64,000 nt of DNA. It comes from Paragordius varius. Its lineage: Eukaryota > Animalia > Nematomorpha. Each line of letters starts with the position of its first letter. Positions within the stretch are counted from its first letter, which is position 1. The stretch is from contig OZ176055.1 of the NCBI GenBank assembly GCA_964247055.1, positions 4,092,001 through 4,156,000 on the forward strand, written 5' to 3'. The position numbers and the translations under genes were made by a program. Shown here piece after piece: positions 6,401 to 45,465 of the stretch. The notes under the pieces are model-generated. The model saw only the letters and a program-made list of their open reading frames with translations, was not told the origin of the DNA and did not search any database.

Positions 6401-9400
6401 TTTGACTAAAAATTAAATTAAACGACTTGAAATTCCTAGTCGAGAACTGATTCAATAACATTTCTATTTATATTTTTTATCGTAGTTTTTGACAAAATTT
6501 AAATATAATTTTTTAAACATATAACTTTATTACTTTTTTAGTAAATGGTGCTTACAAATCAAACAATGGACATATAAGGTATATTTTTAAATTTTATGAT
6601 TCCAAATTAGGTTATATTTATCAATAACTCTATCACATATATTTATAAAAGTTCTTGTAATACAGCTGGCTTACTTACATTATTGATGGTCAATTCGAAA
6701 TACAATGGAAACAAATTTTGTCCATAATTAATTAAACAAAGTAATGTAAGATGGGAAAAAATTATTTACATTTTGTTTTTTTCCATACACTAGTGTGTTG
6801 CCAATTGACCAACTATAACGTGAATAAGCCAGCATAAATGTGCCTACTGTAGTTAGCAAAGCGTAATGAGCTCAAAAATATTATACTGACGTATGGGGAA
6901 AAGGTTTCATATATTTTTCTATCTTAAAAAAATATTTATGGGAAAATCGGCAAGTTAAATTTGGCTAAAAATAGAGAAGATACTATTTTTTCAAATAGCA
7001 ATGACACATTTGCATAATTATCCGTGTTATTTAAATTAACCGATTGGTTTAAAATCACATTTTTTCTACTTTACCCCTGTTTCTCTTCCTAAACCTGCCT
7101 TTTCTTTCAGAAAGCCCGTCATTCAATTTACCCTAAAATTAAAAATATTAAATTATTGGATAATAAAAGTATAAGATCAAAAACATTTTAAAAAAATAGC
7201 GCCTAAAAAGAGTATTATAAACAAGGATTGTTTCCTTTTTTAGTTATTATATCTTTTATTGGACATAAAGCTTAAGAAATTCTTGTCTGATATTTGTCAA
7301 GATCTTACATCACACCCATAATGGTATATATATATACCATTTACAATTCATTTTCACCCTTAAACAATTCAAATTCATCCTTGAACAATTTAAATTCACC
7401 CTTATTCAAATTCACCCTTGAACAATTCAAATTCACCCTCAAATAAAATATATGTTTTTTAAGATTAAAAATTACCATTATTTTTATATATTTTTAAAAA
7501 AATAAAAATTTTGTTTTAAATTAAAATAATACTGAAAAAATAATAAACTATAACATAAACATATATTTAATATTAATAAGGAGTTATATTAGTTCGAAAA
7601 TATATAACTTATTTTTAGGGTGAATTTGAATTGTTTGAGGGTGAATTTGAATTGTTCAAGGGTGAATTTGAATTGTAAATGGTATATATATACCATTATT
7701 ACTTTAAATGTGTCCTTAAACACTTGGTGTTGGTCATTGAACATTTCAAGTTAGCCCTTTAACATTTTTATTTTGTTTTAACTTTTATCAATCAAATCAT
7801 GTATCATTCATCTATTTTCTTTATTTAACATACACTTTAAATCTATATTTATTTTTAATCATTCCGTATATCTTTATTTCTTAAAAAATATTAAATTATT
7901 AAGATTTTAACACGTAAATTAAAAATAAATAAGTTTCTGGGTTATCTTTACAATTTTCTAATAAAAACATTTAGTTAATAATTATTCTAAATTGGAAATG
8001 ATTAAAAAAAAGTGGTTTTTGGATAAAAAATTTTATTTTTAAATAAATATATAATAAATTAGGTTAGAAAATTATAAAATAAAAAAATGCAAAAATTATG
8101 GTCAAATTAAAATTTAGAAATTTTAAGGACCAACTTGCGCAAGGACTAGCTTAAGGTATTCAAGGATACTCTTGAAAGGCAAATGGTATATTAATGGCGA
8201 TTTTAAGGTTTAGATAAAGTATCCAATTAAAAATTTATCCTATTTTAGTGTCTGAAAGCGGAAAAACCAAAATAATTTGATATCACATCCATATTTAAAA
8301 TTTAAGATTTTTTATATTAAAAGTAATAAAAGTTAATAGGTCTATTTATTACATTTTATATATTATTTTTCTTTTTTGTGCACACAGGACGTTGGGTAAG
8401 TTTTTATTAAATAATTTCTTTAATAAAAATATCAGTCTTTATCCAAATTATCTTTATTTTATACCTTTGTTAGATCGATTGAGCCCAAAACCTCACATAA
8501 ACAGGGCTCCACATTATTACACACTGAATCACGGCAGCCCATATGGAATTCAAACAAAAATATCAGCGGGTCAAATATCTCCAACAATCCCGAATTATTC
8601 TCTTCATACAAATTTAACTTCCTCGTCCCATGTGATAAAAAGGGAGAGAAACAATTATCCGACTATCACAACGAATTTCACAAATATCCTTCAACACAAA
8701 AATTCTGGCAGTTACTCTTCAGCGGCTTTGGACCCATTGTATTACCCATGCCAAGAAATGGAGACGATAGATCTGTCATCAAAGCAAAAACGTATGAACC
8801 ATCCGCCCTTAAAAACAACTTTCACAAACGATATCAACAACGAAGTAATGGAGGAAATGCCAAAACTTGGCTCAAAATGTTCAATCCCATTAACGTTTTC
8901 GGGGGTACTTTTTCAAAACTTTTCGCCAGCAATGGTTCAAAAACAGAAGGATCACAATTTAAAATTAGCACCAAAAGAAACAATGGTATGATTGTTGATG
9001 AAACAGACATGGTGCAAGACAATGGAGGTATCGTTCCACAGAAAGGAACGGAATGTATATGCGAAAAAATAGAGAATATTACAGTTAATGATTCTCATAA
9101 AAACCAAAATGGTCATATACAGATAAAACAGGATGATAACATTATTTATATCCAGAATGCTAATAAGTCTGATAAAAATTCTCCAAAAAGTAAAATTTAC
9201 TGTAACTGTCCTGCAAACCTTAAATCGCCAAGTTTGGAATCTCAAACATCACAAAGCTCTAATATCTATAATTTCATTGAGAAAAAATCAAATCTGGGGT
9301 GCCGTTGCAAAAGATTATGCCATCAACCAGATATCCCCACCAATTTGGTACAAAGAGCATCATCACTTTTGTATAAATACTTACAAATAGTTGTGAATGA

Positions 9401-22740: not shown

Positions 22741-23081
22741 CTAACTAACTATAGCAGATTGCGTCGCGTTATTATTCAATGTTGCAGTGTTTGGAGAGGG
22801 TGGGGGTATGTTATTAGTATTAATATTTAGGTTGTTTGCGGGATGTTCAGTCGACGTATTAGATGATAGAATAATTGGTTGCCCACTATTTTGGATTAAA
22901 TTACGAATCTGATTGTTTTCATCAGGCCCTTTTTTAGAGCTTCCTGAATTCGCAACTGTTTGATGCGGATGTGTGGCAAACAATGGCTCTTCTTTATACC
23001 ATTCGGGTATGAGTAATTTTTTGAGGTTTGGAAAGTTTGTGAATTCTAAATTTGGATAAATTCGATACAATTTGGATAATC

Positions 23082-23119
<38 letters not shown>

Positions 23120-26100
23120 TATTATAAATTAACTAAATCAAGAAAAATAAATTGATTCTTAAAAAGTTGATTTAAACATTAAAAAATTAGAGGACTTTGA
23201 AAATGATAGCTTGATCGCAAAATGATATAAAGATCACATTTGTAATTGAAGATAAATAACCGAACATATTTTTTTAAAATATCGCTTACCCTCCCAACTT
23301 GGGAATGATACAAATTATAAGCCCTCGCTCTTCATATTATGCCGAATATTTTTGATTAGTGAAATTTGGTAATAATTGTATTTTTACAAGCTTATTTTAC
23401 AGTTTCATTGTGTACACATGAAAAAAGAGTGAAGTATACTTAACAAAAGTTTTTGGATATAACACAAAACCAACAAAACAAAATGAAAAATGCTAGCTAA
23501 ATAAAATAAAACTTAACTTAATTTACAAAAGTATAAATTTAATAATACCCATGGGAGAAAAATTAAATAATGGAGGTAGTGGATTGCCATTGGGTAATTT
23601 GGTGGTTTGGAGTCTGAGTTCATCGAAAAACGCATGTGCGCATGCCTGTAAAGGATCTAATCGTTGTGATGGAATATATTCAAGTAGTTTTGAGATTAAA
23701 TCAACCGCTTCGGGAGCCACTTTACTTTTAAATACCTATAAATATATTATGGTTTTATTGCATATAAGCGATAAAACATATTAACAATTTGTAAAACAAC
23801 AATGAATATGATAATATAACTAATTATTAATGTAATAAACGAAATTGGTATTTCAGATATATTTTTCAAATTTGGCAACTATTAACATATTTATAATTAA
23901 AATACGTGATTATAATCTTTTTTGATATGTTCAAGCTAACATTAATAAAAAATTAATAGAATAAACATTATATATCATACTTTTGTCCAAGGATGTGCTT
24001 TGATATATGGAAATTTGAATTCAACATAATTTGGATTCATTTGTCGTATTTGTTCTCGCGTAGGTGTCCCCAAAACTTTAATAATTTCCACGAGTTGATC
24101 GACCCCGGAATCACCCGGGAACAATGGATGACCGAGTAATAATTCGGCTAATACGCAACCAGAAGACCAAATATCTGATATGAAAAAAGAAAAATGATCT
24201 ATAATTTACTAATCTTTTCGCGCTAAACATTATTTATTAAAATAAAGTGAATATATAAGATTCGTGTGATAACCTATACCAATTATAAACGAATGGCATA
24301 TTCATTTTTTTCTGTTTATTCACCAAATTAATTTAAATTTTTGATTTTTGACAGAATTAACCAATTAAAACAATTATAATGCCTATATTGACTTAATTTA
24401 GTATCTGTAATATAAAAAATATTTATATCAAAAAAATTCTTAAAGCTTATGTAAAACATATTAAAACCGTTGTAGCTGAATTTTTTATATGGTGTAATAG
24501 AAAAGCATTTTTGCTCGGTTGACTGTTAAAAATAAATATAAGATATCTTTTTATGAAAAAGTCAAATTTTACCATTTTATTTTTTTAGATAATTTAGACA
24601 ACTATAATAGTTAAAGATAAGATAATGTGTATAACTATTTACAGTATTCATAATCCGTAACCCAAAACTATGAGTTATATTAAAAAAAGTTTGGTATTTT
24701 TTAAAAATCGTGTTTTAGTTTTTACGTGATGTTATAATTTTCTATTTTTATATAAAAGCAAGTGGAGATATTTCTTAGAAAATATGATTATATCTTTTGT
24801 ATGTGGCATGTATTTTATAAAATGTTGATTCTACAAAATAATTTATACCAAAGATACGTAATTTATAGTTTATTACTAATATACCTATATTCCATGAATA
24901 ATCCGTGGCGCCAAAAATAAGTTCAGGTGCTCTGTAGTATCTGGAACAAATGTAGGACACATTAGGTTCTCCCTTCACCAATACTTTTGCACTATTTAAA
25001 TAAAATGAAATATAAAGAACAATATAAAGAAAAAGTTGTATTCTATAATATTTAATTACTCAGTAAAACTTAGTTTTCAAATAGTTAAAAAAATACCTGT
25101 TCTTTATTTGAAAAAAATTAATCGTAAGATATTCCAGGTTTAAAAAATGTATTACTTATCAGTTATAAACTTTATTACCATGGGTTAAAATAACCTTTAT
25201 AAAATATATATTTCATGGAGATTTTAAAAAAATTTAAAATCTGTTATCATTAGTATGTTTAAAAAGTTCTTTTACAAATATTTAATTAATATCATAATAA
25301 AAAAAGTAGTATAATTATGGTGATGTCGTATCATATATAAACCGGCAATTTACAATTATGAATTACGGAGTGACTCAAATTATTCATTTTGCTAAATGTT
25401 AAATGGGCTTTTAGTATTAATTTTGAATGTTTAATTATGAGTAGTAAACACAGACCCTAAAACAATAATAAAACAGCACCTATAATAAATTAATCGTTCT
25501 TTTTTATATGGGGAATGTAAATATTAATTAAAAAGGCGCATATAATTTCTGTATAATTAGATATAAATATCGCTATTTTTAGCAAATTTTTAAAGGATTG
25601 AAAAGGCATATAAAACAAAAGGATGAACAATAATATCTAATCCCAAATATAAAAATCTATAAAATTCCTTATTATACAAATTTTGCCGATTTTGAAAACA
25701 AAATTAATACGGCACTCGTTTTATAAAATAAATGAAATGGTTGATTTTTTAGGACAAATGGGAAAAATAAAAATAAAATCATATCCACCAATAATGGATT
25801 ACTTGGAATGACCAAATAAAACATTATAAAATGAAGTAAGGAGTATGGGGTCAACATGATAGAGAATATTATGGCGTTTATAAATCTGATTTTTCTTTTA
25901 ATCGTATGTCACGTGAGGACATATTGTATTTGGCTATTGATATACAACTTTTTATATCTTGTCAGCTGGAAACTAATGTGATGATAATGCTTTCCAGATA
26001 TGCATATTAATTAACCGCTTGGATTATATCGCCCTAATATTCCCTATCATTTTATACGGCTGTGAGAGCTGGACCATTAAAAAAGTGTCGAGAAAAGAAT

Positions 26101-27890
26101 AAACGCTTTAAAATATGATGCTGGAGGAAAATATTTGGTATAACACGGAAGGACAAAGTGAAGAACATCGATATTGCAAACAGAATCAACACACAAACAA
26201 CGCTACGTGGTAAAATAACCAAACAAAAATTTGGTTATTTTGGACCCATAATTCGACTTTAAAAAAATATAATGTTAGTAAAAGTAAATGTCAAGAGAGG
26301 AAGAGGCCGAAGGCGTATTTGTTGGATGGACAAAATTTTATTATTATCCAAAATATTTCTAGAAAAATTATCTCAAAAAGCTCATAACAGAACACAAAGA
26401 AAGTTCTCCTATAAAATGACTAAAAGTAGTTGATCGACTAGATGCTCTCATCAACAACATGGTGTCAGCAATGAAAAAACAAAATTTTCGAAATTTATAG
26501 AAAAAAAAAATATTTAATGTGTATAAAAGACCATAATTTGAATATATATGTTTTGTTAAAACGCATGATCCAATGCAAAAAACATTTTATGAATTTTTAA
26601 AAAATATATCCATAAAAACTTAATAGTGACCTAAGCAAATTTTTTTGGCCACTTATGACCTATAATACAAAATCGTGAATTGTCTTTCATACTCATATAC
26701 ATTTTCAGTGTGTTTGTAATGTAGAGTGAAAAGAAAATAAATATTGATACAAATCAAAAGGGTTAATTAATATGATTGAACACTTATAGTATTATAATAA
26801 AAACGAATAAATTTATGCAACTAAATTGGTTTTGTGGTAAGCTTTTAACTGAAATCAAGTGTTAAATTTATAAAAATACCTTCCAAAATCGCAAAGTTTG
26901 AGGACACTTGTTTCAGGATCCAATAATAAGTTTTGTGGTTTGATATCACGGTGGCAAATACATTTGAGATGAATGTAATTTAAGGCTCGAAACAATTGGT
27001 AAAGATATAACTATAAGCGAAAACCATTATTTTTTACAAAGATAAAAAATTATCATAAACTTACAATTGCAATAATAGTTAAAATTTTAAAACTTTAGGG
27101 CATAATTTTGAAATACGATATTAAATACCTTAACATATATTAGGGGTAATGATTGTTTTGACTTAGAGTAATGTCGAGCCACACGATATACAGTTTCAGG
27201 TACATATTCCAAAACAAGATTAAGAAAAACATCATCTTTCTGGATTGTTTTATTACAAATAAATTAACCAAATTAGAATTCATAGTTGATATATGATTAA
27301 TTTAAATATACGATATAGTAATTTATTTAGGTACCTTCTCGCCGGTGCAATAAAAATAATATCGGAGTCTAACAATGTTACAATGGTATAACAACATCAT
27401 AATCTGTAATTCTCGGTTCTATATAAAAAATATATCATTAAAAGAATATATAAAATACAACTTAACAAGTCCTCGCAATAATTGACCAGCAAAAGTTTTT
27501 CAAAAAATGTTTAAACAGAAAATAATAATAAAATGACTATATAAGCTTGCTTTATAATTAAAAATGACAAACCTTAAATCGTTTATCCTGAAGAACCTTT
27601 TTAATAGCCACCAATTCACCCGTATCTACAAGCTTTGCTTGGAAGACTACACCAAAACTACCATTACCAATAACCTTAGTATCTGTATAAGCAATTTGTC
27701 CTGAGTAATTTTTTTCATTGACTAATTCGGGAAATACATTATTTTCGGGCTCATTAAACTCTAGCGAATGAGCTAAAACAGTAGTAATTTTATTTCCACT
27801 AGATGCTCCGTTTACGGATGAAGTCCCGTGATTATTGTTTGTACTGTTGATATTTGATAAATTTGTTGAATTTTTTTGGTTGTTAGGCAT
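22741..27890 (-). CDS. GSK3: Glycogen synthase kinase-3 (shaggy), 478 aa
   Basis: Exons 27890-27573, 27418-27335, 27239-27129, 27010-26880, 24991-24885, 24174-23981, 23735-23549, 23045-22741 total 1437 nt in frame. Motifs [55 protein letters not shown]. Confidence 0.97.
26030..26450 (+). mobile_element. 3' fragment of an RTE-clade LINE in a GSK3 intron
   Basis: Decayed frames read [39 protein letters not shown]...YFGPIIR...[12 protein letters not shown], typical of the RTE C-terminus. Confidence 0.8.
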
Positions 27891-28399: not shown

Positions 28400-31300
28400 A
28401 TGTTTCAAATTTTTCGAAATTTTGGTTATCCGACGTTATACGGGCCTATATCTTATGAATATGATCCTTTTTTATTCAATTTTGTATGGTTTTCTAATTC
28501 TATAATTATATCATTCTTGGTTATCTTAATTGGAGTTAGAGGGAAACAGGTTTCAAAAATTTAATTTTAGCGTATCCATACATTCTTTTATGGCTGTTTT
28601 TCATTGGCAATTGGGATCCTTATCATATGTAAGCACATATTATTGTTATAAAAAAATTAACACCTTTATACATTAAAAAAATGCTCGATTGCATATTGAA
28701 CGGTTCTCAATATGGTCATATTTATAAAATCATTATTTTTTCTAAATTATTAGTTTATTTGCGCATTACTCATAGGTACTTAAGTTATATTTTTCTTTTA
28801 GCTTAAGCAATAACTACAATTTATGATGTAGTACGATTTCCTTGAACTTGAAAAACATTTATAATTCAACGAAAGTTATAAAATAAGTTAAACACTTGTT
28901 AATATTATGCTAAATCAAGTGGAAATAGTTATGTCAAAAAACCTATATAGTTAAATATATGTTTATCTGGATTTAAGATTATTTTTTAGTATGTAAATTT
29001 CCTAAAATATAATAATTATCTATTTGATATGCTTATATAAGTAAAATTTTTTATATAAACATTTAAATTAGCCCGGATTGATTAATGTTGTCTGAAATTT
29101 TATTTTTACATAAATTAGATGTCTTTAAATTATAATTATATATATATATATATAAAACGATTTGTTGGTTTGGGACTCTTTTATCGGCCAAAATATAAGA
29201 TAAGATAAATTTGGTTACTAAATGACATTTCTATTTTTGAATGCATATAATATGGGCAATTAATTTCTAAATTTTTTCAAACATATATTTTAAGACAGAA
29301 TCCAAGGTTAATTTTAGCAAAATAAATAATTATGTGACACAAAATTAAATTGTATATTGCATTTTAAGGTATTTTTCAAACTTTTAAATGTGATACAAAG
29401 ATATTGACATTGACAATGAAATATATATGTTTTAACACGTAGTATCAAAAAAAGATCTCTTTTCAAAATTTAAACCTAAAAATATTAATTTAATTTAACA
29501 CGCTTTTTTTGTTCGTAACTATATAATGTTCTATTGTTATCGATACTTGCTCTTGTTATTGTTTGATCGAAAGATGGGTAATGCAATAATTAAAAATAAA
29601 CTGATAAAACATACAGATAACTCGCTTTGAATAAGTCGACAATTAAGTTATGTCATTAAATGTGATAACTAATGGTTTCAGTAAATATTTTTTGCATTCA
29701 GATTTAAAACTGTCACCGAAACTGCCGTTCATTTTTTACATGCTTTTAAATTATATTCAGAAATCTGGAATGAATGATAGATTTAATTTGGGTGTTACAC
29801 AAAATATATGACTTTTTACACCTTTTTGCGAATAGTCAAATATTTGGTTTGCGGGAATTTGGGGCGTTTATATGCAGTATTATAAAAAAATTATTTGGAT
29901 GTAAATAAAATTATAAGGTAGTTATTTCATTAATGGCAAATAAAATCATTGGTGTAGTCATACGTTTTTACTAGTTTTTTAATAAAATATGTAATTTATC
30001 AACTAATGATTCAAAATATTGTTGATCGGCTTCGATAGCCGCGCCAAAAAAACTGATTGTCATTTGAGGCATATCATTAGTCAACCAATTATCCAACGTC
30101 TTAGAATTTATTGAGGTGCTATCTGCGAACGTGTGCCCCCATCGCAATGTATTAGTCATTTAGGAAGGAAAGTTCAACGAATGATGAAAAATTTTTCATC
30201 GAACTCATTGCAAGGTTCTTTTCACTTTTGTTGTGTGAGACGGAGAAATACCGTGTAACAAAGTCACTTGGCCATGTCTTTCTCATTTTTCGGTTAATAT
30301 AAGGTTATAAATTATAATTTGTTAACGATAGCGTTATATATTTACGGTGTGCCGGGCTTATAGAGTTTACAACCAATACCGCTATGGACCCACCAGACAC
30401 CAAGCATGTCTTTTTGTCAAAGCGATTTGGCCTTGGTATTGATGAACCGGCTTGGAAGCCAATATTTTTTCCCGTCTTGGATTTATAAAATAAACTTCTA
30501 TTTCTCATCACCAGTCAAAATTCGAAGCAAAATTGATTTCTTTTCGTGACGCTGAAGCAGGATTTCACCAGTCACTTTAAAATTTATTGATCCTTTTCAT
30601 TGCTCGTAGACGTATGCTGATAGTTTTTACATGTACTTCTGTCTGCTGCTGAGTTTACTTGGTCATAAAATAACTCTTGCATCTGATAGGTTATGCGGTC
30701 TACTAGAGCGCCTACTATATTTCACATTTCTAAATTTTAACATTTTTGAAGCCATACTCACATATGTTTCTACCAGCAAACAATGAATTGTAACAGCCTT
30801 TTACTTTTGATCGTATGAGAAGAGTAATGCTTGCTGCAAATGTTCTTTAGGCACAAACCTAATGATTACTGATGATAAAAATAAGACGCTATCTTTGGTA
30901 AATCCAAATTTTGGGTGTTTGTAGTTTAATGTCAGATATACAAAATGGGCTGTGTGTCAAACTAATCGTCTGTCTACTTTTCGCTCACGTCCTCTTTTAG
31001 TTAAACGGTAATGACTTATGGTGCACTTGTTTTGTTAAACTTATACGATTTGTTTTATAGATCATATTAACAAACGTAAATAAATAAACAAGTTAGTAAT
31101 AGTAATGAAATAGTCATTTGATAGCATATTTAACTCTAATTAAGCAAAAATTAATCGTTTTATCATATTTTGTTTATACTTAGTAAAACAATTTGATTAT
31201 TATTTATGTTATTTAAAGTAAAACAATTTGATTATTTATGTTATTTTATTTATTTACGAAATACTAGCATTGATTTATCACCTTAAACGACTGTTTTATA

Positions 31301-34300
31301 GGCGGCCGATCAGTTATTATTTTTTGATTGGAAGTTAAGATTACTTGCATTTAACTGTAAATACTAACTTTTTATGAAACATCTATTAATTAAATTTGAT
31401 TTCACATATCAATCAGAAATATAATTTTATTGAATTTTAATATAATTGAATTTTCAATTTTTTGATATTATATTGGAAAAATTGACTCTTTTCATTGAAA
31501 TTATCATTAGTTTGCAATCATGCATATGAATGGGAAACAGGGTCAGTCATTATCACTAGTCATCAACTAAGTCGCAATAAAAACCATGCTGTAATTTCGC
31601 CTATAATTAACACAATTAATGTTTCAACGACGGACAGAAATTCGCAAAGGAGGCGCATTAATTGGCCGTTAAACCAAAGAGTTTCATTGCATATTGGATT
31701 ACGTGGGTTTAATATCACCTTACGTGAATTGGGTATGTTTTTTTATATAAAGCATAAGCGTGAACATATTGATGTGCTACATTACTTTAAAATGACTAAA
31801 ATTAATAAAATACGTTAGTGTATGTTAAATAATTTTGAAATAAGTTTAATACATTTTAAGTCTTAATTTTAATTTTTATATTTTAATACATAAATTTTGT
31901 TGCATTCCCGTTTCAAACAATTAATAATATTTTTGGTTGAAATATTCGATTTTTGAATCCAGTTATATTTTAAGGTTTTTAGTCACAATTTTTGAACATC
32001 GCATACTTATAAGTTGAGTAGGTTAAGTTTTAAATTAATAATAGGATATGCACTAGGGATAGACACTTATAGAGATTTGTTTTAATCTATTTAATTATTT
32101 ATTTACTGCATTTTTATTGCTTAACTAGCCCTTGAATGCTTTTATACTTATTAAGTCTCCATTTTAATTCTATTTTGTTGCAATCTTTAATTAGTAAGTG
32201 TGTCCAAAAATAATCAACTTTGTGTATATTATAAAAACACTAAATATTACTTAAACCAGTGGTTAAAAGGGGGCGCGAAAAAAATTGGAAAATATAATTA
32301 AAAAATAAAACTAGAAACAAATTTAAGGATTTCAGGTGCGAATTATCAAGATTTCTCACCGATATGGGAAAAATATTTTCAGAAAATGTAGATATAAGAA
32401 TTTCATTGATTGAGATTTTTATATATTATAATAAATTTTACATTTTTATTTTGGATTTTTTTGAGAGGGGGGGGGGGACGCTACAATTTTTATTTTCAAT
32501 TTTGTGGGGCGTGAACAAAAAATGGTTGGGAACCACTGGACTTAAACCATACGTCATTAACAATTAAAGCATTTCTGAAATAGTCTTCTTTTGGATGCAT
32601 GATTTATATAAAAGAGGTAATATACTATTTACAATTTATCACCCTTAAACAATAAAAATTCTCCCTAAAAATAAATTATGTGTTTTCGGGCTACTATAAC
32701 TCATTATTAATATGAAATATATCTTTATGGTTTACTTTATTATTTTTTCAGTGTTATTATAATTACAAACAAAATTTTATTTTTTATAAATATAAATATA
32801 TAGGTAATATTTAATTTTAAAAAACACCTATTTAATTTAGGGTGAATTCGAATTGTTCGAGGGTGAATTTGAATTGTTCCGGGGTGATTTTGAAGTGTAA
32901 ATGGTATATATGGTATTAGTGTCATTTATATAACGATTTTAATTCAGAGTTTTTTATTTAGAAAATGATGATGATAAATTAATATCACTGCCAAATAATG
33001 TAATTTATATGCAAAATAATTTTGCCAATTCTCACTTGCCAACAAATACTGCTAAATCAACCATTTTAAATAATACTGCCCAATCACGAAAGTCCCTATC
33101 TAACCATAAATCTCTCTTGAATTATAATGAAGCTTTCAGATGGGATTGGGAACAAGGTATAAAGTTTTTTCCTTAAAAATTGTAATAAAAAATGCTGTTT
33201 AATTTACGGTAAAATATGTCTAAATCACATTTATATATACCTGTTTAATCTTGGAATATATATCATATCTAGGTATTTTGGTTCACAATTCACCACTAGA
33301 AAGTAAATTATCCCGCACTTATTACAAAGGTCTTAAGCAAGGAATACCGCAACCAATTATTACAGTGGCTCAATACTTTTTATTAGATGGGGAGCTTATG
33401 AGGTGGGCCAGATACTATAGGATAGCTGGATATTATGGATTCATTCTTACCTGGTATACATTATATTTTGCTGTGTTTTTCTCAACTTTATGTAGATAGC
33501 CAAAAAAATTTGAGAAACCGTCTAGAAAGGCATTAGATATACTTAATAAAGTCCCATTGCTAACATTTTAGTGTTAAATTTAGGTTTTGATATATATCTA
33601 AAAAAGTTTATGCTCAATATACAATTATTAATCAACATTATATCTATATATTTTTATGAGCATTGAATTATGTATACTGCGGTGTTTACCATATATAGAA
33701 CGAAAAAAATTTCAAAATTACATAATAACGCATTTTATTGGTAAATTTTATAAAAATATTTTAAGGAAAATTAATTAATATTTATTTACATTAGTCCAAG
33801 AGATGCTTACAATAAGTGACACACACATATATATATATATATCATTTTTAATAATTTTTTTAATTGAAAACCTAAACCATAAAACTATATATCGATATGT
33901 AAGATAAAAATATATAACCCGAAGTTATTGATAATAACTAGTAACATAAATTATATTTTTCTAAGAAATGCTTACAGTGTAACATTAATTCGTGAAAGTT
34001 GATTTTATAGATAATTTTTTATTATATTTACACATAGTTTGTGATATTATGATAATTAATTTTTTTTATACCTTCGTATTATGTAATATCTTAAATTTTG
34101 AGATAATTGCAGCATTTGTCTTGGAATCAGTTGCAATACTTTGCTCATAAATATTATAATATATAATGATATATGTTTAATATTTGTGTCTTATATATTT
34201 TTTCATTTTACCATTTTTTTGATGATATAATAAACTCATTTAAAATTAATGTGGTCGTCATTTGCCCTATTTACAATTAAAAAGAAATTATACGGACAAA

Positions 34301-36961
34301 ACGTAAAATTATAAAAACAATTGTTTTTAAATAACCATAATTAAACTTGATTTTTTTAAAATAACTCCTTATTTTTAATTGCAAAATATGATATAGATGT
34401 AGCAACTCTTATATATTTTACGATTGTAATATATAGATAAAATCAATTAAAAAGTATGGCTGTTTTTCGAAAAAAATATTTGTCTTGATATTTTTACGTT
34501 TAGTCTGCATAATTTCAATGTTTACTGTAAAGGGACAAATATATATTGTTTTTTATCCAATTTTATTTTTAGGTTAGCTTTTCCATGTTGGATCCTGGCG
34601 AATTTCCTCATATACATTTGCATTAATTACAGTGGGATATGTTGGATGGCTTGTGGTTTAAGCTTGTTGGCCTGTGATGGAATATTTTGGTTTTATCGAA
34701 CGATGCATTACAAACCGCTCATTATACATATTGAGGGACAACTCATGACTCTGCATTTGGGATCTACGTTTTGGATTGTTTTTGTTACCGGTATATCTTT
34801 ATGACATAAACACATTTAATATCTTATTTTAAGGGGAATATTGTTTTATTATACCTTATTATGAATAGTTTTATTGCGACATGCCAGTTGTTTTATAAAC
34901 TCTTAGAACATTTTTGATTTCAACCTTTAAAGTTTTTCCTTTACCAAGAAACCTATTAAAATTTGCCCTAAATAAATACGTTGCTAGGCTGACCTATAAT
35001 TTGGGTAAAAAATTGGGTAAATTATCATCTTTTGTTTAATAATTTAAATCTGTTCTTTGAATTTTTTATCCTTTTTTAATTGCGTCTATTTTATTATATT
35101 TATAAATAAACCAAAATTAAATGGCTGTGTTTAGTTGTATATATATGTTCGAGCCTTAACTTATTATATGCCTTTTTACTTTCTAAAATAAAATATTAAT
35201 GAATAGGTATTGTGAGTTGTATGATTGGCCTAATCATAATTATTGCCGATTACAAATGTTACAATGAGTTGATGGCTTTTTTCGGAATCGATGTGTTGCA
35301 AGAATATGAAGATTATTACGCAGGTTTTTATACAAAATTTTTCTTCTCCTTCATTAAATGAGCGAAAACATGTGAATAAAACTTGCGTTCAAATTTCCTA
35401 AATATTTTATTAATGTTGTCGTTGATAATTAAATTACCTATGTTAAGTTTTAATAAAATACGAGTTAATTTTAGGTAATTTAGTATTATATTAAATAAAA
35501 GATGAATACCTTAAACGTATTTTTTTATAAAATGGGTTTAAAAATCCATTTCTAAAAAGAATCGAAAAACTGTCAACTTATTCGCACAAAAAAAAGTTTT
35601 AATGAGTTACGGTTCCACATCTCAATCAAACGCGATACCTTTTCAATTACTTAAAGCACTATTATTTCTATATAAGATTTTTAAAAATTTGCTGTGTTTG
35701 TTTTTCCTTTCATATATTTTACCATATATCCTAATAGATCCAAGCGAATTATTAGGCTCGAAATCCCCTTCGCAAAAACCAATTATTTCTGATTCCTCAG
35801 ATTTGGAAAAATCTGCTGAAACTAACACTTGTGTAATGGCTACACATGCAAGGAAATCGACACCTAAATTAGCAACGGAAAAATGCTCCGATATTATAGA
35901 CAGCACTATAACTAAGAACTCCCGTAGTCAAACTTTTACAAATATGTCCTGTTACCTACGTACAGACCTAATCAAAAGCTCAAACATTTGTGATAGTCAA
36001 AAAAATTCAGTATTAATCATTATATGTATATACAATTTTTTCGGTTTTTCGTGGGAACATTTATAAAAAAATTTATCTGGATTTTTTTACATTTGACAAA
36101 GTTTAGTCGTAGTGAACTTAAATTAATGTTTTAGTTTGATTTTTGCTCTCACAAAATATTTTGTCACAATTTAAATAAATGTTTTTTAGATTTTAAAAAT
36201 TTGAAAAAAATGATTATTATACATTCAGATACCTGTACTAAAGAGAAGAGGAACTTCGCATTCATTTCTTTATAGGAAGCAACGAAAAACGCCCATAAAT
36301 AGTAAAAATCCCAACACTATGTTAGAAAATGCTAAATCCCATATATTACCGACTCGATCAGTTCCACTTGATTTGGAATCAAACTATGATCATTTCAAAA
36401 CGGCTCAACATTTTAGTAAATATTTCCATATTTTACCTTAAAGATAAAAGCAGGGGACAAAACAAATTCAAAAGCATTATCCAACTGTTTTATAAATAAA
36501 AAATAGGTTAAATGAATTTATCGTCTTTATAATACAATATGTCGGCATTTCTTCATTTTTTATATATTTTATTTAAATTAAAGTTTTAATTAAACTAGCT
36601 CGTAATTTTTTTCTCCACATGTTTGTTAATGTTTCGCGGAATCATTCAGATTTTTATATTAACATATCGTTAAATTTTTGATAATAAATTAGAATCATTT
36701 GACAAATGTGAACCGGAACCAAAATTATTCAAACCCCAATAAAGAAAGAAATTAAGATTTGATCCATATATAAAAGTTTTTATATATAATTAATATTCAA
36801 AAACATCCCCATTTATAATTAATTTTTTATAATTTTTTAAAAAAAAATAATTCATTTTAGATTTCCAGAATAACAAATATTCTAAACCAATTTGTGATGA
36901 TTTGGTTTCCGATAATGCCAATCCTACTCTAAGTCCAATTAAAGAAAATTCTTATATTTAA
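28400..36961 (+). CDS. DUOXA: Dual oxidase maturation factor (DUOXA/NIP/DOXA-1), ~566 aa
   Basis: Exons 28400-28549, 28571-28628, 31511-31732, 32962-33156, 33273-33453, 34573-34790, 35207-35323, 35738-36009, 36229-36415, 36861-36961 (last two less certain). Motifs MFQIFRNFGYPTLY, LIGVRGKQ, LHIGLRGFNITL, NYNEAFRWDWEQG, KGLKQGIPQPI, RWARYYRIAGYYG. Confidence 0.88.
29948..31030 (-). mobile_element. Near full-length decayed mariner (Mos1-like) element in DUOXA intron 2
   Basis: Broken minus-strand frames: FVP-KEHLQQALLF; EILLQRHEKKSILLRILTGDEK*; SSIPRPNRFDKKT; VTLLHGISPSHT; IEADQQYFE. These are colinear with Mos1 transposase. Degenerate TIR remnants near both ends. Confidence 0.85.
32257..32539. 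mobile_element. hAT-type MITE
   Basis: CAGTGGTT...AACCACTG(G) flanked by the direct repeat ACTTAAAC (32249-32256 and 32540-32547). Confidence 0.8.
32623..32906. mobile_element. MITE, TACCATTT family (short type), copy 3
   Basis: TACTATTTAC...GTAAATGGTA, TA flanks, same core and 21-bp repeats as the other copies. Confidence 0.85.
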
Positions 36962-37763
36962 TAATAGCAATAAAACTTTTTTGAATCATATCATACATAA
37001 TATACTTATATCTCATATCACAGCCATTTTATTATTTTATTCTAATATTCTCATAATTATATATATAGTGTAATTTATATTACTATTGTTTATGGAAGTA
37101 TTAGGATATATTAGTCTATATATCCCCTATTATCTTATTACAATGCTCATTTTTCCTTATTTCAAAAATCAAAAATTCAAACATTTTCAAAATTCATTAT
37201 TTAATTATTTTTATAATAAATAATTTGAATTATTTATCTTGATAATCTATAATGGGAATTTTTAAGGAATACCGGTTTTAATAAAGAAAAGGCATTTATT
37301 TAATTATATTTTAAAAGCAAAATAAATTGCGCTATACTGCAGTTTAATTAGGTATATGTCCGTAGTTATTGACACAATAAAGGCAAAACAGAACCTTGCA
37401 TCTATGCATCGATTTATAGGACGCGTTCAATGTACTCACTCAACCCTATCAACCAAGAAGTCGGTTGATTAATGCTTATATGCAAAAATTAATTAAAGAT
37501 CTGATAAAAGAAAAAAATGCAAAAATAATAAAGTCCATATAACCAGATATAAATTTAGGTATTTAAAATTTATGATTTGAGCAAAAATGTACATAATACA
37601 TTGGTTAATTATATGTAAACCTGATGGTATAAACAAACCAAAAATTATCTTTGATATATATATATATATATATACAAAAAAGAAATAAATCGAAATTCGA
37701 AAATTCATTCATTCAATAAAATTAATTAATGGGAAAAATGTATTTTTTGACTATCACAAACGA

Positions 37764-40700
37764 TCAATGATGAAATAATCGTTGAGGGGTAAATACAAGC
37801 GTTAAGCCATAATCATTTGCCGCTTCGATAACCAACTGATCGTTATGTGAACCGGCCGGGGTTGCGATATACTTTACTCCAGACTGCGCGATAAAAATAA
37901 AAATTTCAAATTAAATGGATTTAAAATATACCACCTTAGGGTTGGTTTTAACAAGTATTGTGAATGAATAATGTAATTATGGTTGTTAGTGTGACCGCAT
38001 TTGATTAACTTGTCGTATAATTTGTAAATATGGAAATTGTATGATATAAAATAATAAAATTAAAATAACATTTTACCGTTTAAAAAATATATTTTTAAAT
38101 TTTAAGTAAGTGTTATAAGTTTATGTCTAGTACAATAATTTAAATTGGGTATTTCGTTTTATTTTATATATCTACTTACATTAGTTTTATCTATTGACTG
38201 GTTATGACCGTAAATGACTGCTTCCATAATCATCCAATAAAACATATCAAAAACCTAACCCTAGTGAATAAATGTAAATATATGAACGCACCTTAACTGC
38301 CCTGTCTATACTGTCACGGAAAGGGAAAAATGCATCGGATGATAGACATACTCCAGAAAGTTGTTTAAGCCATTCACGTTTTTCTTGCTATATTTTTTAT
38401 AACACAAAATAATTTGTGTAAGTTGTAATATTAATAAAACTTAAATAATTATAAATATAATGTTTTTATCCATACTCTAGTTAGGGGTTCTGGTGTTTGA
38501 GAAAACACATGTAGAGCTTGTTGATATGCTAAATCATTCTAATTATTAAATTATACGTATTTAAATATAAAAATTAAATAATCTGTATTAATTTAGTTTT
38601 GGCATATAATAAAAAAACCGGTTAAATAATAAATTTCAATTTTAGCACTTAATATCTTTATTTACCTGTAATTTTTTGATATTAGCTGGTTGGGTATTTA
38701 AAAACAAATATATAAATGAATGTAAATATGCACCAAATTAGTGGTATTATACCATTTAAACAGTTGATTTATAACTTCCCGTCTCCATATAAAATTACTA
38801 TAGTAAAATTTTACACAAACAAAACAAAAAGATAAGATATTATATACCACACCAAATAAATAATTACAATTAAAAATTTATTTGTCTAACATCCATTTAT
38901 TAGTGAACCAATATATTTCAATTTGTATTAAAAATTTAAAATTATTACGTGATAATCTTCATCTTCAAAATCAGTTGTAATATACGTATCAATCGCATTA
39001 ATTTTTTCGGGTCTTTTTACTCCGGGTTTAAAGGACAAATTCAATACTTTGGGATGATGTCGTAACCACCTAAAATAGCGATTCGGCAAAAAATGAATTT
39101 TTTTTATTTAAAATACGGTAAAGTTAATAATAAAAAATAACAACAAACTTTGGTTAGTATACTCAAACCGCGGCCCTAAAAGTCTTTTTTTATGACCGTA
39201 AATTATTTAATTTTTTGATGTACTTTTTTTAAGTATAAATATCAGCAAATGTGTCAAAGAACTATGAGATCCCTTGAGACAAGATTAAAAGGTGTGGCCT
39301 TTAAATTTTTATAGAAAAATACTCAAAATTATAAAAACAAAGCAGACAAAGAAAAAAATATATATTAAAAAACCATATTTTTAAATTTTTGATAAACATA
39401 ACCTAACAGTTGGGGCCGCAAAATAAGAAAGATATATTAAATGGTAATCTTAATTTTATCTTTTAGAATTGTTATCATTTAGGTTATATAAAAACAATCA
39501 AGTATCAAAAGTTGCATTTCTCCAAAAAATAATGGAAATTTTATATACCATTTACAGTTCAAATTCACCCTTGAACAATTTAAATTCACCCTCTAACAAT
39601 TCAAATTCACCCTTGAACAATTCAAATTCACCCTCGAACAATTCAAATTCACCCTATTAATAAATTATGTGTTTTCGAACTAATATAACTTATTATTAAT
39701 ATAAAATATATCTTTATGGCATAATTAATTATTTTTTTCAGTATTATTTTAATTTAAAACAAAATTTTATTTTTTAAAAATATATTAAAATATAGGTAAT
39801 TTTTAATCTTAAAAAACATGTTAATTATTTGAGGGTGAGTTTGAATTGTTCGAGGGTGAATTTGAATTGTTCAAGGGTGAATTTGAATTGTTTAAGGGTG
39901 AATTTGAATTGTTTAAGGGTGAATTTGAACTGTAAATGGTATATTTTGTCTTTATAATAATTTTAATTTTTATGAGTCTAACCAATTATCAGCCTTTTCT
40001 CCAGCAAGTCGTGTACAATGTATTCGTGATTGCTGACCAGCCCCTATACCTATAGTTTGCCCTTGGTAGGCATAACAAACCGAATTTGATTGTGTATATT
40101 TTAACGTTGTGGTCGCCATCATAAGATCTCTCAGAGCTTCGCCAGTTAACTAGTAGTATTAAGGAAAATATATGATTTTTGTCAAAAAAAATTTTTAATT
40201 AATCATTCACATTTCATTTAATATTTCATTCCGATTTACAAAAAAAATATAATCATATACAAGACAAGTACTTTTTGTAAAAATGACCATACTTTTTTGT
40301 TTTGTTACCAATTTATATCTCTATTTCTAATTTTGCAACCCAAAACCATAGGGTATATTAGAAATTATAGAAATATGGTTGTTCTTATAAAAATATTTCA
40401 CCTATTTATCCTTTTATGATTAACAAGAAAAAATATTTACATGTTTATTGGTGGATACAATGTTTGAAAAAAATTGCGAATCAATTTGTATATCATTTCT
40501 TGGCTGTTCTAACGTTAAGCCAAATATATTTTTTCGTTCAAGAATAGTTTTATCAGGGTAGTAAGTTGGATCGATCTAGTTGAAATAAAAAGATTCTATA
40601 TAAGTCTGTTAAAAGTAAATTTATAAAAATTGATAATGGGAAAAATTATAATATAATAGAGTATAAACATATAAGAATATTATTTTTATTAGGATGTTTT

Positions 40701-43700
40701 TTATTAAAATTATTTTATAAAATAGAGGTAAATGTTTTACTGTCATTGCCTTGCTTTCAAATTAAAAATATATAACACAGGTTTTTTATCTAAGGTTATG
40801 GGTAGTTACTGTGTTTTTCAAATCATAATATCAATTTAAAGCAAAATATTAACATTTTTAACCTTTTATAAAAAGCAAAAAATTATGGAAAAATATTAAT
40901 TGATATACCTGTATAACAAGGTAAGATCCATTTTTCTTTCGTTTTAAAACATCAAGCGCTTCAGGCGCAAATGATGGTGCAATTATTCCATCCGATACCT
41001 TATCGCAAAACGCAGTCAAAAATATATAAATATTTGCAAAACAGTCATAATTTAAAAACTTTGGTAGGTGTAAAAATGCAAAAAAACTTCTTTTTGAAGA
41101 AAATTCGCATAAAATCTTTGCTATTATTAATGTGTCCCCGTTTTTAGTTTTAAAAAACTATTTTCGTTAAAAAAATGATCTAATCACCTCTTTGGCTATT
41201 AGCGCCGCAGTTTGAACATCACATTCATGGGATAAAGCAATAAAATCGCCATAAGATGACATTCTATCCGAACCTAATTATATAAAAGCAATACTTAATA
41301 AATTATAAACAAGTTATTTGAAAGTATAATATATATGTACGTAAAATTTTGCTATCGCCTTTAAAACCGTGATTTTATAAATATAAACCTGACCGATGTA
41401 TTAATTTTTTTAAACAAATAATGCACAATTTCATCCATATTTTTTGTAATATAGATAATTTTTTGATAAAAATACTGCAGTCGAAATATTTCAGATTGTG
41501 TATAAAAATCTTTCAATATTCTCAGTATTTCGCACACTATGTTTAATAAGTTTAAAACAAAACTTACAACGCGCTCTCGTGAAAGCTATAGCCATAGGCG
41601 TCATGTGTTGAATATTGTTAATATCCAACATAAATACTTGGGAATCACGTTTGGTATCAACAAAAGGAGCAGAAATTCCAACTCCCGCAGGACTAACATG
41701 CTTAAATGAAGCCGCAACCGCATAGCAAAAGGTATCTGTGTAGAGTAATATGTCTGTATATAGATATCAATTATAAAATTTTTTTATTAAATCAATCATT
41801 TATATTTTTTCAAAAAAGTATTAAATCATCCAATGTTTGTATGTGGTTTTGCCTTAATATTTATTTTAAAACTTATTAATTTTACTCAGTTGAAAGCTTA
41901 TCCATTTTCCAAATTATTATATGAGTTTGATTAATTTCAATGAATCTGGTAATATACCAATCCATAAAGTATGATCTTTTTATCCTACAAAATATTATTA
42001 CAAAATTAATTTTTTATAACTAAATAAATATATAAAAGTGTTTTCAGAAAGACCCTATAACTCAATTTTAATTTTTCACCAATCTGATTCTAATACCTTT
42101 ACTTTATTTCAGAAAATTAGCAAATTTAATTTTAATTCATGTTTTTTACAGTGTAATAATTGAATATTAATAATAATAATCTACAATAAACAATAGATAA
42201 AATGAAAACTGTAAACACCAACCTTCACCGTTAGTTAAATGGCTTAAATCTCCATTAATCTCATTTGAAAAATGTGAATTATCGTTTAATCCGTTTGGCA
42301 TTTTGTTTATGCTTTTCAAGTTTTGTGCCAATTCTGAAACTAAAGCCCAGCCATTCAAAGCATCCAACATATTAATGTAACCGGGTGCCCCGTTTAGAAC
42401 TATGTAAATGAAATAAAAATATTTAAAAATAGATAAGCTTCATGCTTTAATAAAAATCTTAAAAATGGTAAGAAATTTGTTCATTTAATAAAATATTATA
42501 TTAGCATTTATTGTTTCCAAAAAAATATTAAAATTATCATTATATATCGATAAAAAATATAATTGGATACGAATTTGTATAAATATTAAGAAATGTAAAA
42601 GGTCATCCATCACAGTTGGACGTCTTCTTTAATTACTAACAATGCTTTTCAATATCGTTCACCATATTTTATCATATGCTCCAATTCATAATAATATATT
42701 TTAAAAAACATAAATGACAAATAATTTAACTTTCAAAAAATCATATTGATTTTATGTATCTAACGAAAAACTTTTGATAGGTAGCGGACCAAACGCATTA
42801 AATATTTGTGCCGGTTTTTGATTGGGATTCATTCCGTACCGCAAATCAATTTGATAAGAAAGGTTTTTTTCGCCCTCACCACAAGAAGATAGATCTTTTG
42901 AATATTGTTTCCGCAGGTAATTGGATATAGCATCATCGTATTGAGCTGTGTGAGAAAATGCCTAAAAATAATACATAATTTTGAGGTCATGATTAATACG
43001 GTAACATTATTGGTAAAATGATAGAAAAAAACCCTTTAAGTTTCAAATAGAAAAATAATTTACTATCCATTGTTATAAATACAAAAAAACCATTTTGCAA
43101 AAATTATTGCTTTTTTAAAAAATAACTTGTTTCATCATAGAAATGAATGAGCTTTAATTAATGTTTAGGTTTTAATAATATGGATATATTAAAGGTAAGG
43201 GTAGATATTATAACCAAAGATATGTAGATAAACTTTTTAAACAAAACAATGAGATTTATATATTTATAAACTATTAGCAATAAATAATTAATTCTCTCCT
43301 ATCAATGTATTTATTAAGTATTTTTGGGTTTGTAAAGTATTAAAAAATAAACACTTTTTATATTAAAATTCGTATAAAAATGTTATTATTCCCAATTTTA
43401 TAAAAAATGATTGAAGATATATTGGCTAAAATTATTGATAAAATTGAATTTTGCGATTATAACCTTACATCAATTATAAAAATGCTAATATTAAAAGTAA
43501 GGAATAAATATATAGAATACATAAAAAATGAAGATTCTTTCATTATGAGTGTCAAATAAATTTTGTAAATTATTTTGACACGTATTTATTATTAATACTT
43601 TTAAAGCAAGGTGTTTGCGTGTCTCCACCGAGATCATGTTTAACTCTTCATATTCTTGAATAAACACATCATAGTCTTGACAAGTGCATAAAACAGTAAC

Positions 43701-44864
43701 TCTTTCGGCATTTTTCGCAGCGGCCCTCAAAAGCGTCACACCCCCAATATCAATATTTTCTATGGCATCCTCAAAACTTATATCATCAATATTTTGCGTG
43801 ACTTGAGTGAAGGGATATAAATTGCATATGACAAGGCTATATAAGTATAGCGATATATTTATAATAAATGAAAATATTTTTCCTGTCCCAATTGTCTTAA
43901 TACTCAAAAATTAATGTCTATGACTTATTTGAAAATATTTTTACACCAAATAAGTATATCAAATATTTTAAGAAATATATCAGGGTCATAAAAAAAATTT
44001 AGGGACACGGTTTAAATATCACTGATTCAGACTATACTTCTGTCATATAATAGATAAAATGAAAATAAACAGATTATAAAAATATTGTGATTAAAATAGT
44101 TCACCATGCATCATATTCGTTTAATTTGTTATTGTAATATCCATTTCCTGGTTTATTTAAAAAAAATATAAATTAAACTTAGCATTATAGTTTATATCGA
44201 TTATAAATTGTATTGGAAAGGAAACGTTATTAGAGAATCGGAATCTAAAAAATTTATTGGAAAATTTTTTTCAATTAGTGATACATTGATAACCATCTTT
44301 ATTGTTTGCAGGTTTATTTATGGGTTTTTTAACATTTATAAAAGTAGAATCAACTGGTTGATATATTTTTTGTGGTTAATTATTACTTTGTATCGTAAAA
44401 TAGATATCCTGATTTTAAATAATATAACCAAAATTAGAACAATACCGAATTGGAAACGGAAACAAACATATTTAAAATTAAAACCATTAGGTGTAATCCG
44501 TTAATAAGTAGATTTTTAACCAAAAATAATCCCGGTAAAACTTTGTTAAAAATAGCTTACTCAATTTTTTCAAAATTAAAATCAGCCAAATCTTTGTCAT
44601 CATCTTTGTTGTTGTTTCTGGCAAGTATACCGGCATATATGGCTGGATGTAAGGTTTTTACTCTGCCACCCAATATTTCCACAAAACCGGTATATTTTGA
44701 AATATTAGTGACGGGTATACCTAAGTTTTCGATGTATTTGGAAGTATTGCCAGAAGCGATTAATTCATATTGCTTTGAAGATAAAAATTTAACAATTTTA
44801 TCGAGATATGTTTTATCAGATACACTAATAATTGCTAAATTTATAATCAATTAAAACCTCTCAT
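37764..44864 (-). CDS. ATIC: Bifunctional AICAR transformylase/IMP cyclohydrolase
   Basis: Exons 44864-44858, 44834-44561, 43836-43599, 42961-42772, 42399-42223, ~41750-41568, 41273-41188, 40998-40909, 40575-40441, 40149-39983, 39069-38949, 38387-38292, 37883-37764. A small exon between 38388 and 38948 may be missing. Motifs [78 protein letters not shown]. Confidence 0.95.
39546..39941. mobile_element. MITE, TACCATTT family (short type), copy 4
   Basis: TA|TACCATTTACAGTTC...GAACTGTAAATGGTA|TA with about five 21-bp units per arm. Lies in an ATIC intron. Confidence 0.9.
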
Positions 44865-44936
44865 TTTCAGCGTGGTTTTCTTCAACCGAGTTTACAATAG
44901 TGTTTTTAATGTTGGATTAAAAAAAATTAAATATTT
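44865..44936. promoter_or_regulatory. Putative bidirectional promoter region between ATIC and MED10
   Basis: Only 72 nt separate the divergent ATGs at 44864 (-) and 44937 (+). Confidence 0.55.
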
Positions 44937-45465
44937 ATGATGGAAGAAACTCTTTCTCGGACCAAATATGACTCATTAAGTAAACGACTAGAAGAACTTA
45001 TAGAGCATTTTAGACTAATTGAAATAATGGTTAGCGATTTTCAGCCACAAAGCCAAGTTGCGTTTAACCAGCAAATGTAATACTTATTTTTCTTTTTTAA
45101 AATAAATCATATATCATTTTTTTCTTTTAGAAATTCTGTCATTGAAAATTTACAAGAAATTCAAAATATTAAGCTCGATCTACCAGATATTCAAATCCCA
45201 TTCGATCTAATTGAGTATTATATGTTAATATTCCAGATTTATTGATAAAGATTTAACCACTGAAATATATATGAAAGATAATATGGATAAATGTATATTT
45301 AAGAATGAGGAGTCAAAAAAACGAGTTGAAACCTTTCAGGTTTTTTGAACATTTTAATTTCAGAAATTCAAAACTTTATTGACATCCGAAATATCCAATA
45401 TTTATCCGACTGATATAACGAAATACAACATATTACGCAGTGAAGATACAACATTTGAAATTTGA
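44937..45465 (+). CDS. MED10: Mediator complex subunit 10
   Basis: Not in the ORF track. Exons 44937-45076, 45131-45214, 45237-45339, 45364-45465 give ..LEELIEHFRLIEIMVSDFQPQSQVAFNQQINSVIENLQEI..IQIPFDLIEFIDKD..KNEESKKRVETFQKFKTLLTSEISNIYPTDITKYNILRSED.., colinear with human MED10. Confidence 0.9.

Follow-up and report, generated by a model that had tools for sequence, protein, structure and literature searches.

The DNA considered here is a stretch of 64,000 nucleotides (nt) of contig OZ176055.1 of the hairworm Paragordius varius, referred to below as the window; all coordinates are window positions. It has a G+C content of 27.6% and carries, among others, the genes DUOXA, ATIC, MED10, JMJD5/KDM8 and GSK3. 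In the first three of these, four segments of only 21 to 24 nt are found that begin with GT, end with AG and interrupt the coding sequence. They appear to be spliceosomal introns, and they occur alongside introns of ordinary and even kilobase size. The four candidates are the following.

28550-28570, forward strand: DUOXA intron 1, 21 nt, GT-AG, GTTTCAAAAATTTAATTTTAG; phase 0; in-frame stops TAA and TAG
44857-44835, reverse strand: ATIC intron 1, 23 nt, GT-AG, GTTTTAATTGATTATAAATTTAG; phase 1
45215-45236, forward strand: MED10 intron 2, 22 nt, GT-AG, GTATTATATGTTAATATTCCAG; phase 2
45340-45363, forward strand: MED10 intron 3, 24 nt, GT-AG, GTTTTTTGAACATTTTAATTTCAG; phase 0; in-frame stops TGA and TAA

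An earlier note on this DNA had singled out these segments, and inspection of the sequence confirms the positions, lengths and GT...AG ends that it gave for all four. It had also held that each of them must be removed to restore a protein. Local translations bear this out, in that retention of any of the four destroys its reading frame. Homology searches were performed by individual exon, against Pfam, PDB and protein collections; joined translations were made locally, for frame checking.

The short introns of MED10

The strongest case is provided by MED10, where homology is found on both sides of each short segment. The gene is built up as follows, the two short introns being those listed above.

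44937-45076, forward strand: exon 1, matching Pfam Med10 profile positions 2-32
45077-45130, forward strand: intron 1, ordinary, 54 nt
45131-45214, forward strand: exon 2, matching Pfam Med10 profile positions 35-61
45237-45339, forward strand: exon 3, 34 codons, residues 1-33 corresponding to human MED10 70-102 (PDB match)
45364-45465, forward strand: exon 4 including the TGA stop, residues 1-28 corresponding to human MED10 104-131 (E 6e-4)

Exons 1 and 2 share a common offset of 13 to the residue numbering of the Pfam profile and are therefore in register across the 54-nt intron. Exon 2 has no match in PDB, and exons 3 and 4 have none in Pfam. In exon 2, the alignment with Pfam extends up to a codon that ends at 45212, and in exon 3 the alignment with PDB sets in with a codon that starts at 45238, which leaves 25 nt in between; the reading frame differs between the two exons. 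The 22-nt GT-AG segment and one codon (GA|A, Glu) together make up exactly these 25 nt. On this evidence of frame and alignment, the segment is the sole frame change that would fit between exons 2 and 3. When it is retained, the frame shifts and a stop is encountered within 10 codons. The second junction is equally precise. As exon 3 comprises 34 codons, exon 4 opens exactly at human residue 104 once 24 nt are excised, and excision of exactly this number recovers an unbroken alignment with human MED10, while retention leads to ...ETFQVF*. The joined model is an open coding sequence of 429 nt. It is thus close to certain, as judged from the genomic sequence, that both segments, of 22 and 24 nt, are genuine introns.

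MED10 ends with its stop codon at 45463-45465, and after a gap of 6 nt the ATG of JMJD5/KDM8 follows at 45472, also on the forward strand; this arrangement looks operon-like or bicistronic. JMJD5/KDM8 itself is a single-exon gene of 534 amino acids.

The probable short introns of ATIC and DUOXA

In the two other genes, the junctions are graded lower than those of MED10, because they are supported by frame and phase logic and not by homology across the junction. The relevant part of ATIC comprises the following elements.

44858-44864, reverse strand: first coding exon, ATGAGAG, 7 coding nt
44561-44834, reverse strand: exon 2, Pfam MGS domain; begins CAATTATT in the model joined to ATGAGAG
43837-44560, reverse strand: intron 2, ordinary, 724 nt, GTAAGC...TATAG; later exons are about 1 kilobase apart

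Residues 2-88 of exon 2 align with human ATIC 9-94 (E 6e-20). This exon contains no in-frame methionine, and an in-frame TAA directly precedes it. Within the 30 nt upstream, a single GT occurs; it lies 7 nt after an ATG and in the phase that is required by the acceptor. Splicing from this GT yields an N-terminus that matches the RAIISVSDK start common to many PurH proteins and fragments, and retention of the 23 nt yields MRGFN*. The ATIC segment is therefore probably a genuine intron.

The start codons of ATIC (reverse strand) and MED10 (forward strand) are arranged head to head with 72 nt between them (44865-44936). This gap must accommodate both 5' untranslated regions and any shared promoter, or else the transcripts overlap.

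For DUOXA, the following elements can be delineated.

28400-28549, forward strand: exon 1, 150 nt, open from ATG to ...GVRGKQ, ending in phase 0
28571-28628, forward strand: exon 2, 58 nt (19 codons), ending in phase 1 before the donor GTAAGC
28629-31510, forward strand: intron 2, ordinary, 2,882 nt, with a phase-1 acceptor at 31510
31511-31813, forward strand: exon 3, with a tentative 3' end (alternative donor at 31733) and a sub-threshold match to Pfam DuoxA, profile positions 86-129
33300-33496 and 34646-34804, forward strand: further exons, with Pfam DuoxA matches

The size of exon 2 given here, 58 nt, is a corrected one. Starting from the ATG exon and passing over the 21-nt intron, the chain continues through the 58-nt exon, the donor GTAAGC and the phase-1 acceptor, and runs in frame into the exons with Pfam DuoxA matches. 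When exon 1 is joined straight to exon 3, with exon 2 skipped, the frame is broken, and when the 21-nt segment is retained, translation ends at a TAA (...GVRGKQVSKI*). Across the proposed junction, GxRGK is followed by a hydrophobic SLxIG, presumably at the spacing of vertebrate DUOXA. The 21-nt segment is probably also a genuine intron, as far as can be judged from frame and phase.

Farther downstream, two frame-compatible splice pairings exist between exons 3 and 4 (31733 or 31814 with 33273 or 33300), so that the intron measures 1,540 or 1,486 nt. Of the two, the longer exon 3 agrees better with the Pfam alignment, in which profile positions 86-129 run beyond 31733. The 58-nt exon 2 sits between introns of 21 and 2,882 nt and would thus have to be defined beside both size extremes.

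Common properties of the four segments

From the base composition, GT and AG at both ends are expected with a probability of about 0.0025 per junction. Their presence in all four segments is far beyond chance, also when some boundary sliding is allowed for. The G+C content of the segments is low, 13-23%. The motifs pointed out in the earlier note are indeed there: GTTT at the start of three of the four, and, in all four, an A at position -7 relative to the 3' end and a TAA within positions -12 to -5. As a background set for motif controls, every GT..AG segment of 21-24 nt in the window was taken, 859 in total. Each of the four segments combines an A at -7 with TAA and YAG, as opposed to 7.2% of the background. 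By chance this would occur in four out of four with a probability of 0.072^4 = 3e-5, a figure that applies to features picked afterwards; indeed, all motif and donor features were selected post hoc, after viewing the data. TTAAT, which fits the branch-site consensus yUnAy, is present in the 3' half of three of the four segments and in 4.5% of the background.

Less significance can be attached to the stop codons. Paramecium shows an excess of stops in introns with a length divisible by three. In-frame stops are present in both segments of such length, as the earlier note had observed, but they carry no evidential weight: random GT..AG segments of the window contain one in 52% (21 nt) and 60% (24 nt) of cases. 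The stops are therefore uninformative, and an excess of the Paramecium type cannot be claimed here.

The 5' splice sites are reduced relative to agGTaagt. At donor positions +3 to +6, the number of matches to AAGT is 0, 0, 1 and 1 for the short introns, in comparison to 2-3 for seven ordinary introns of the same window (exact Mann-Whitney p = 0.006, for four versus seven introns with ordinary boundaries set by the authors). Finally, none of the four short introns lies more than about 400 nt from the start codon of its own gene.

Evidence against and alternative explanations

The interpretation that we favour, and to which we assign a probability of roughly 0.85, is that all four segments, of 21-24 nt, are real introns of the major (GT-AG) spliceosomal type and have to be spliced out of the DUOXA, ATIC and MED10 pre-mRNAs. 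A number of points weigh against it. The introns are known here from genomic sequence, that is, from frame, phase and homology. Exact look-ups of JMJD5 and of ten long open reading frames of the window in a 15-billion protein collection were blank, and the proteins of this genome are absent from it. Copies in relatives did not come to light: homologue searches with JMJD5, ATIC exon 2 and a DUOXA exon, and a search among representatives with MED10 exon 1, found no hairworm MED10, ATIC or DUOXA, and the short exons narrowed the range of candidate lengths. With JMJD5, no close relative was recovered; the best large contigs, L001 and L002, have 38-40% G+C and no MED10 beside JMJD5. A local tblastn search with the joined translations was run once, against these two contigs. 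ATIC exon 2 retrieved only fragments, from AT-rich bacteria-like sources, the full-length models being outside the length window. The representative search with MED10 exon 1 retrieved two unrelated repeat proteins only, and the DUOXA exon retrieved nothing. In a screen for segments of 18-35 nt that join open reading frames, 343 GT-AG candidates were obtained in comparison to 333-802 for control dinucleotides. There is thus no GT-AG excess and the screen is powerless, so that this class of introns becomes visible only through homology. In the donor comparison, the boundaries of the ordinary introns were picked by ourselves, for samples of four and seven. To these points are added, for single genes, an ATIC exon 1 of 7 coding nt, a DUOXA exon 1 that has no match in Pfam or PDB, and a DUOXA exon 3 that has no match in PDB. 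The last three form the starting point of the two alternatives that survive best.

The first of these concerns ATIC only. The 23-nt segment would then not be an intron in its own right: the true first coding exon may be situated farther upstream, overlapping MED10 on the opposite strand, and be joined to the same acceptor at 44835, or another start may be used. An exon with so few coding nucleotides gives some room for this, as does the unusual geometry of the 5' untranslated regions that follows from the 72-nt spacing of the start codons. In the unspliced frame, moreover, there is an L-A pair such as presumably also lies just upstream of SVSDK in vertebrate ATIC; the alignment with human ATIC begins downstream of the pair. 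The in-frame TAA directly upstream of exon 2 and the lack of a methionine within it argue the other way. Furthermore, according to a rough estimate, an ATG would by chance come to lie 7 nt ahead of the sole GT nearby, and in the phase needed, in about 5% of cases, and the segment (GTTT...TAAAT...TTTAG) has the same build as the other three. We regard this alternative as unlikely.

A little less likely still is the second, which applies to DUOXA only and supposes that the exon at 28400-28549 and the 58-nt exon do not both occur in the mRNA, being chance frames or an alternative first exon. As exon 1 is unmatched in Pfam and PDB, the junction draws on frame and phase logic, together with the GxRGK...SLxIG motif. 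A search of a protein atlas with exon 1 did not give a match either, the Pfam DuoxA match of exon 3 is sub-threshold, and an open stretch of 19 codons has a chance of about 18% in the composition of the window. It would then have to be a coincidence that the exon chain runs in frame into the Pfam DuoxA exons and that skipping of exon 2 breaks it, apart from the presumed likeness in spacing to vertebrate DUOXA.

Retention of the segments in the RNA, because of pseudogenes, assembly errors or ribosomal frameshifting or bypass, seems very improbable: the ends are exactly GT-AG in all four cases, every exon is open and conserved, two of the segments have a length divisible by three and contain stops, which an indel error does not explain, and MED10 would need two such events within 150 nt although its alignment with the human protein is exactly unbroken. 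Excision from somatic DNA, in the manner of the internally eliminated sequences of ciliates, has the small size of the segments as the sole point in its favour and is next to negligible, as the ends are GT-AG instead of TA-TA, and the YAG acceptor, the T-run and the branch-site-like TTAAT suit a spliceosome.

A possible mode of recognition

If the four segments are introns, they would most likely be recognized across the intron by conventional splicing of the U2 type, with minimal signals. The donor would be reduced to GTWT and bear little resemblance to AAGT. The branch site would be A-rich (TTAAT or TAAAT), its A being 7 nt away from the 3' end, and a few T residues would precede YAG. The distance from the donor to the branch point would be 14-17 nt only. 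Given the closeness of all four to the start codon, the cap-binding complex may aid in their splicing as cap-proximal introns.

The earlier note went further. It proposed that these are ancestral introns that shrank, with positions in ATIC and DUOXA that would match those of vertebrate introns, which may be so. It also took introns of this size to imply that the spliceosome is modified or that a second mode of recognition exists. The latter implication does not follow, as U2 small nuclear RNA (snRNA) and U2AF1/2 are conventional in both animal lineages for which similar introns have been published (PMC13644364). A separate mode for the short introns is possible but not required. The only indications for it in the window are the weaker donors, based on four versus seven introns, and the TTAAT near the 3' end, and these are very small samples; the weak donors, and likewise the proximity to the cap, are to be seen as hints and not as evidence. 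An Rfam scan of the window revealed no snRNA or other RNA gene.

Ordinary introns and other features of the window

The other introns were described earlier as ranging from 54 nt to several kilobases, and the sizes found agree with this: 54 nt in MED10, 154, 95 and 118 nt in GSK3, 724 nt in ATIC, and 2,882 and about 1,486 nt in DUOXA. The short introns make up 4 of the 11 introns in the window with fixed ends, and there is no dominance of short introns in the sense of a median below 30 nt. DUOXA and ATIC have kilobase introns in addition to their short ones. In the 5' and 3' parts of GSK3, no tiny intron is found. Consequently, tiny introns are not present in every gene here. On the basis of the sequence of this region, it can be stated that a class of introns shorter than about 30 nt very probably coexists with ordinary and kilobase introns in an AT-rich genome, sometimes within a single gene.

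GSK3 is located on the reverse strand, at 26855-27890 and 22741-24981. Its first exon comprises 110 codons, and it has only ordinary introns, of 154, 95 and 118 nt and longer.

The window further contains two families of 21-nt tandem repeats, each of which is present as a pair of arrays in opposite orientation (3051-3264 and 4385-4681; 7343-7676 and 39554-39933). These arrays resemble the arms of foldback transposons and are found inside the region of a gene for a turtle-like immunoglobulin receptor and inside an ATIC intron.

Comparison with known short introns

In the literature consulted, which extends to November 2026 and does not include the study of Acutogordius and Nectonema in Current Biology, animal introns below 30 nt are described only for dicyemids and myxobolid myxozoans, and none are linked to hairworms. 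The most recent survey among it is that of Hadjez et al. (Mol Biol Evol, September 2026). Of 51 animal genomes, a set that may or may not include a hairworm, those of myxobolids and Dicyema are according to this survey the only ones with introns shorter than 30 base pairs (bp); the authors predict that further lineages with such introns exist (PMC13644364). The earlier note listed ciliates, nucleomorphs, microsporidia and dicyemids as known cases and omitted the myxobolid myxozoans, with a median of 22-27 bp (PMC13644364).

As in dicyemids, GT-AG introns of 20-30 nt interrupt conserved genes of an animal, the splice motifs are reduced, and a few A residues are found upstream of AG, which in Dicyema are the likely branch site (PMC13644364). 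About two thirds of the Dicyema introns are below 30 bp, with a median of 27 bp (PMC6543705, PMC6736024); the medians reported by Zverkov et al. are 27 bp in Dicyema and 57 bp in the orthonectid Intoshia. Dicyema differs in that its entire distribution is short (mean 38 bp) and its genome is reduced, to 67.5 Mb. Here, on the contrary, the tiny introns share genes with introns of 724 to 2,882 nt and are located in repeat-bearing DNA.

The myxobolids Henneguya, Thelohanellus and Myxobolus are similar in the sizes of the introns, the weak donor and acceptor motifs and in that both groups are parasites. Long RNA reads and the conservation of intron positions have validated the ultra-short introns of these species (PMC13644364). 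In contrast to the situation here, these introns are the majority and have short neighbours. Furthermore, the conserved A residues of myxobolids recede from AG with increasing intron length, whereas the A is fixed at -7 over 21-24 nt in the window (four introns). Outside the animals, ciliates such as Paramecium and Stentor, as well as nucleomorphs, have introns of 15-30 nt together with a conventional spliceosome (for Stentor: PMC13644364).

Minor (U12-type) introns also constitute a second intron class beside ordinary introns, but their donor and branch site differ from those seen here. This assignment was rejected, as none of the four segments has the donor (A/G)TATCCTT or the branch site TCCTTAAC.

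Implications

For the gene annotation of hairworms, the limits on intron length that are in use are of importance. STAR treats gaps of less than 21 nt as deletions. The default minimum intron of AUGUSTUS is 39 nt (PMC7858049). In the phylum, Gordionus montsenyensis, with a published G+C content of 26.93% that is near the 27.6% of the window, has been annotated with STAR and BRAKER; introns are unmentioned and the BUSCO completeness is 71.6%. In view of these limits and of this annotation, the gene sets of the phylum and the claims of gene loss that are derived from them may need to be redone with lower limits.

It is possible to speculate further, although we consider it rather doubtful that all of the following applies. 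Hairworms would then possess a discrete class of cap-near introns of 21-31 nt with almost no donor consensus, beside kilobase introns of the same transcripts and in a large, repeat-rich genome, and these would be spliced, for example, with assistance of the cap-binding complex or independently of U2AF. Many gene models would be truncated, and part of the loss of universal genes reported for Nematomorpha would be an annotation artefact.

If RNA confirms the four introns, hairworms would be the third animal lineage with introns shorter than 30 nt. They would also be the first of these lineages with a non-compact genome, given that introns of 21 and 2,882 nt flank one and the same 58-nt exon. Extreme shortening of introns would then be separable from genome reduction, and the handling of both size extremes in a single transcript by one spliceosome would provide a system for study.

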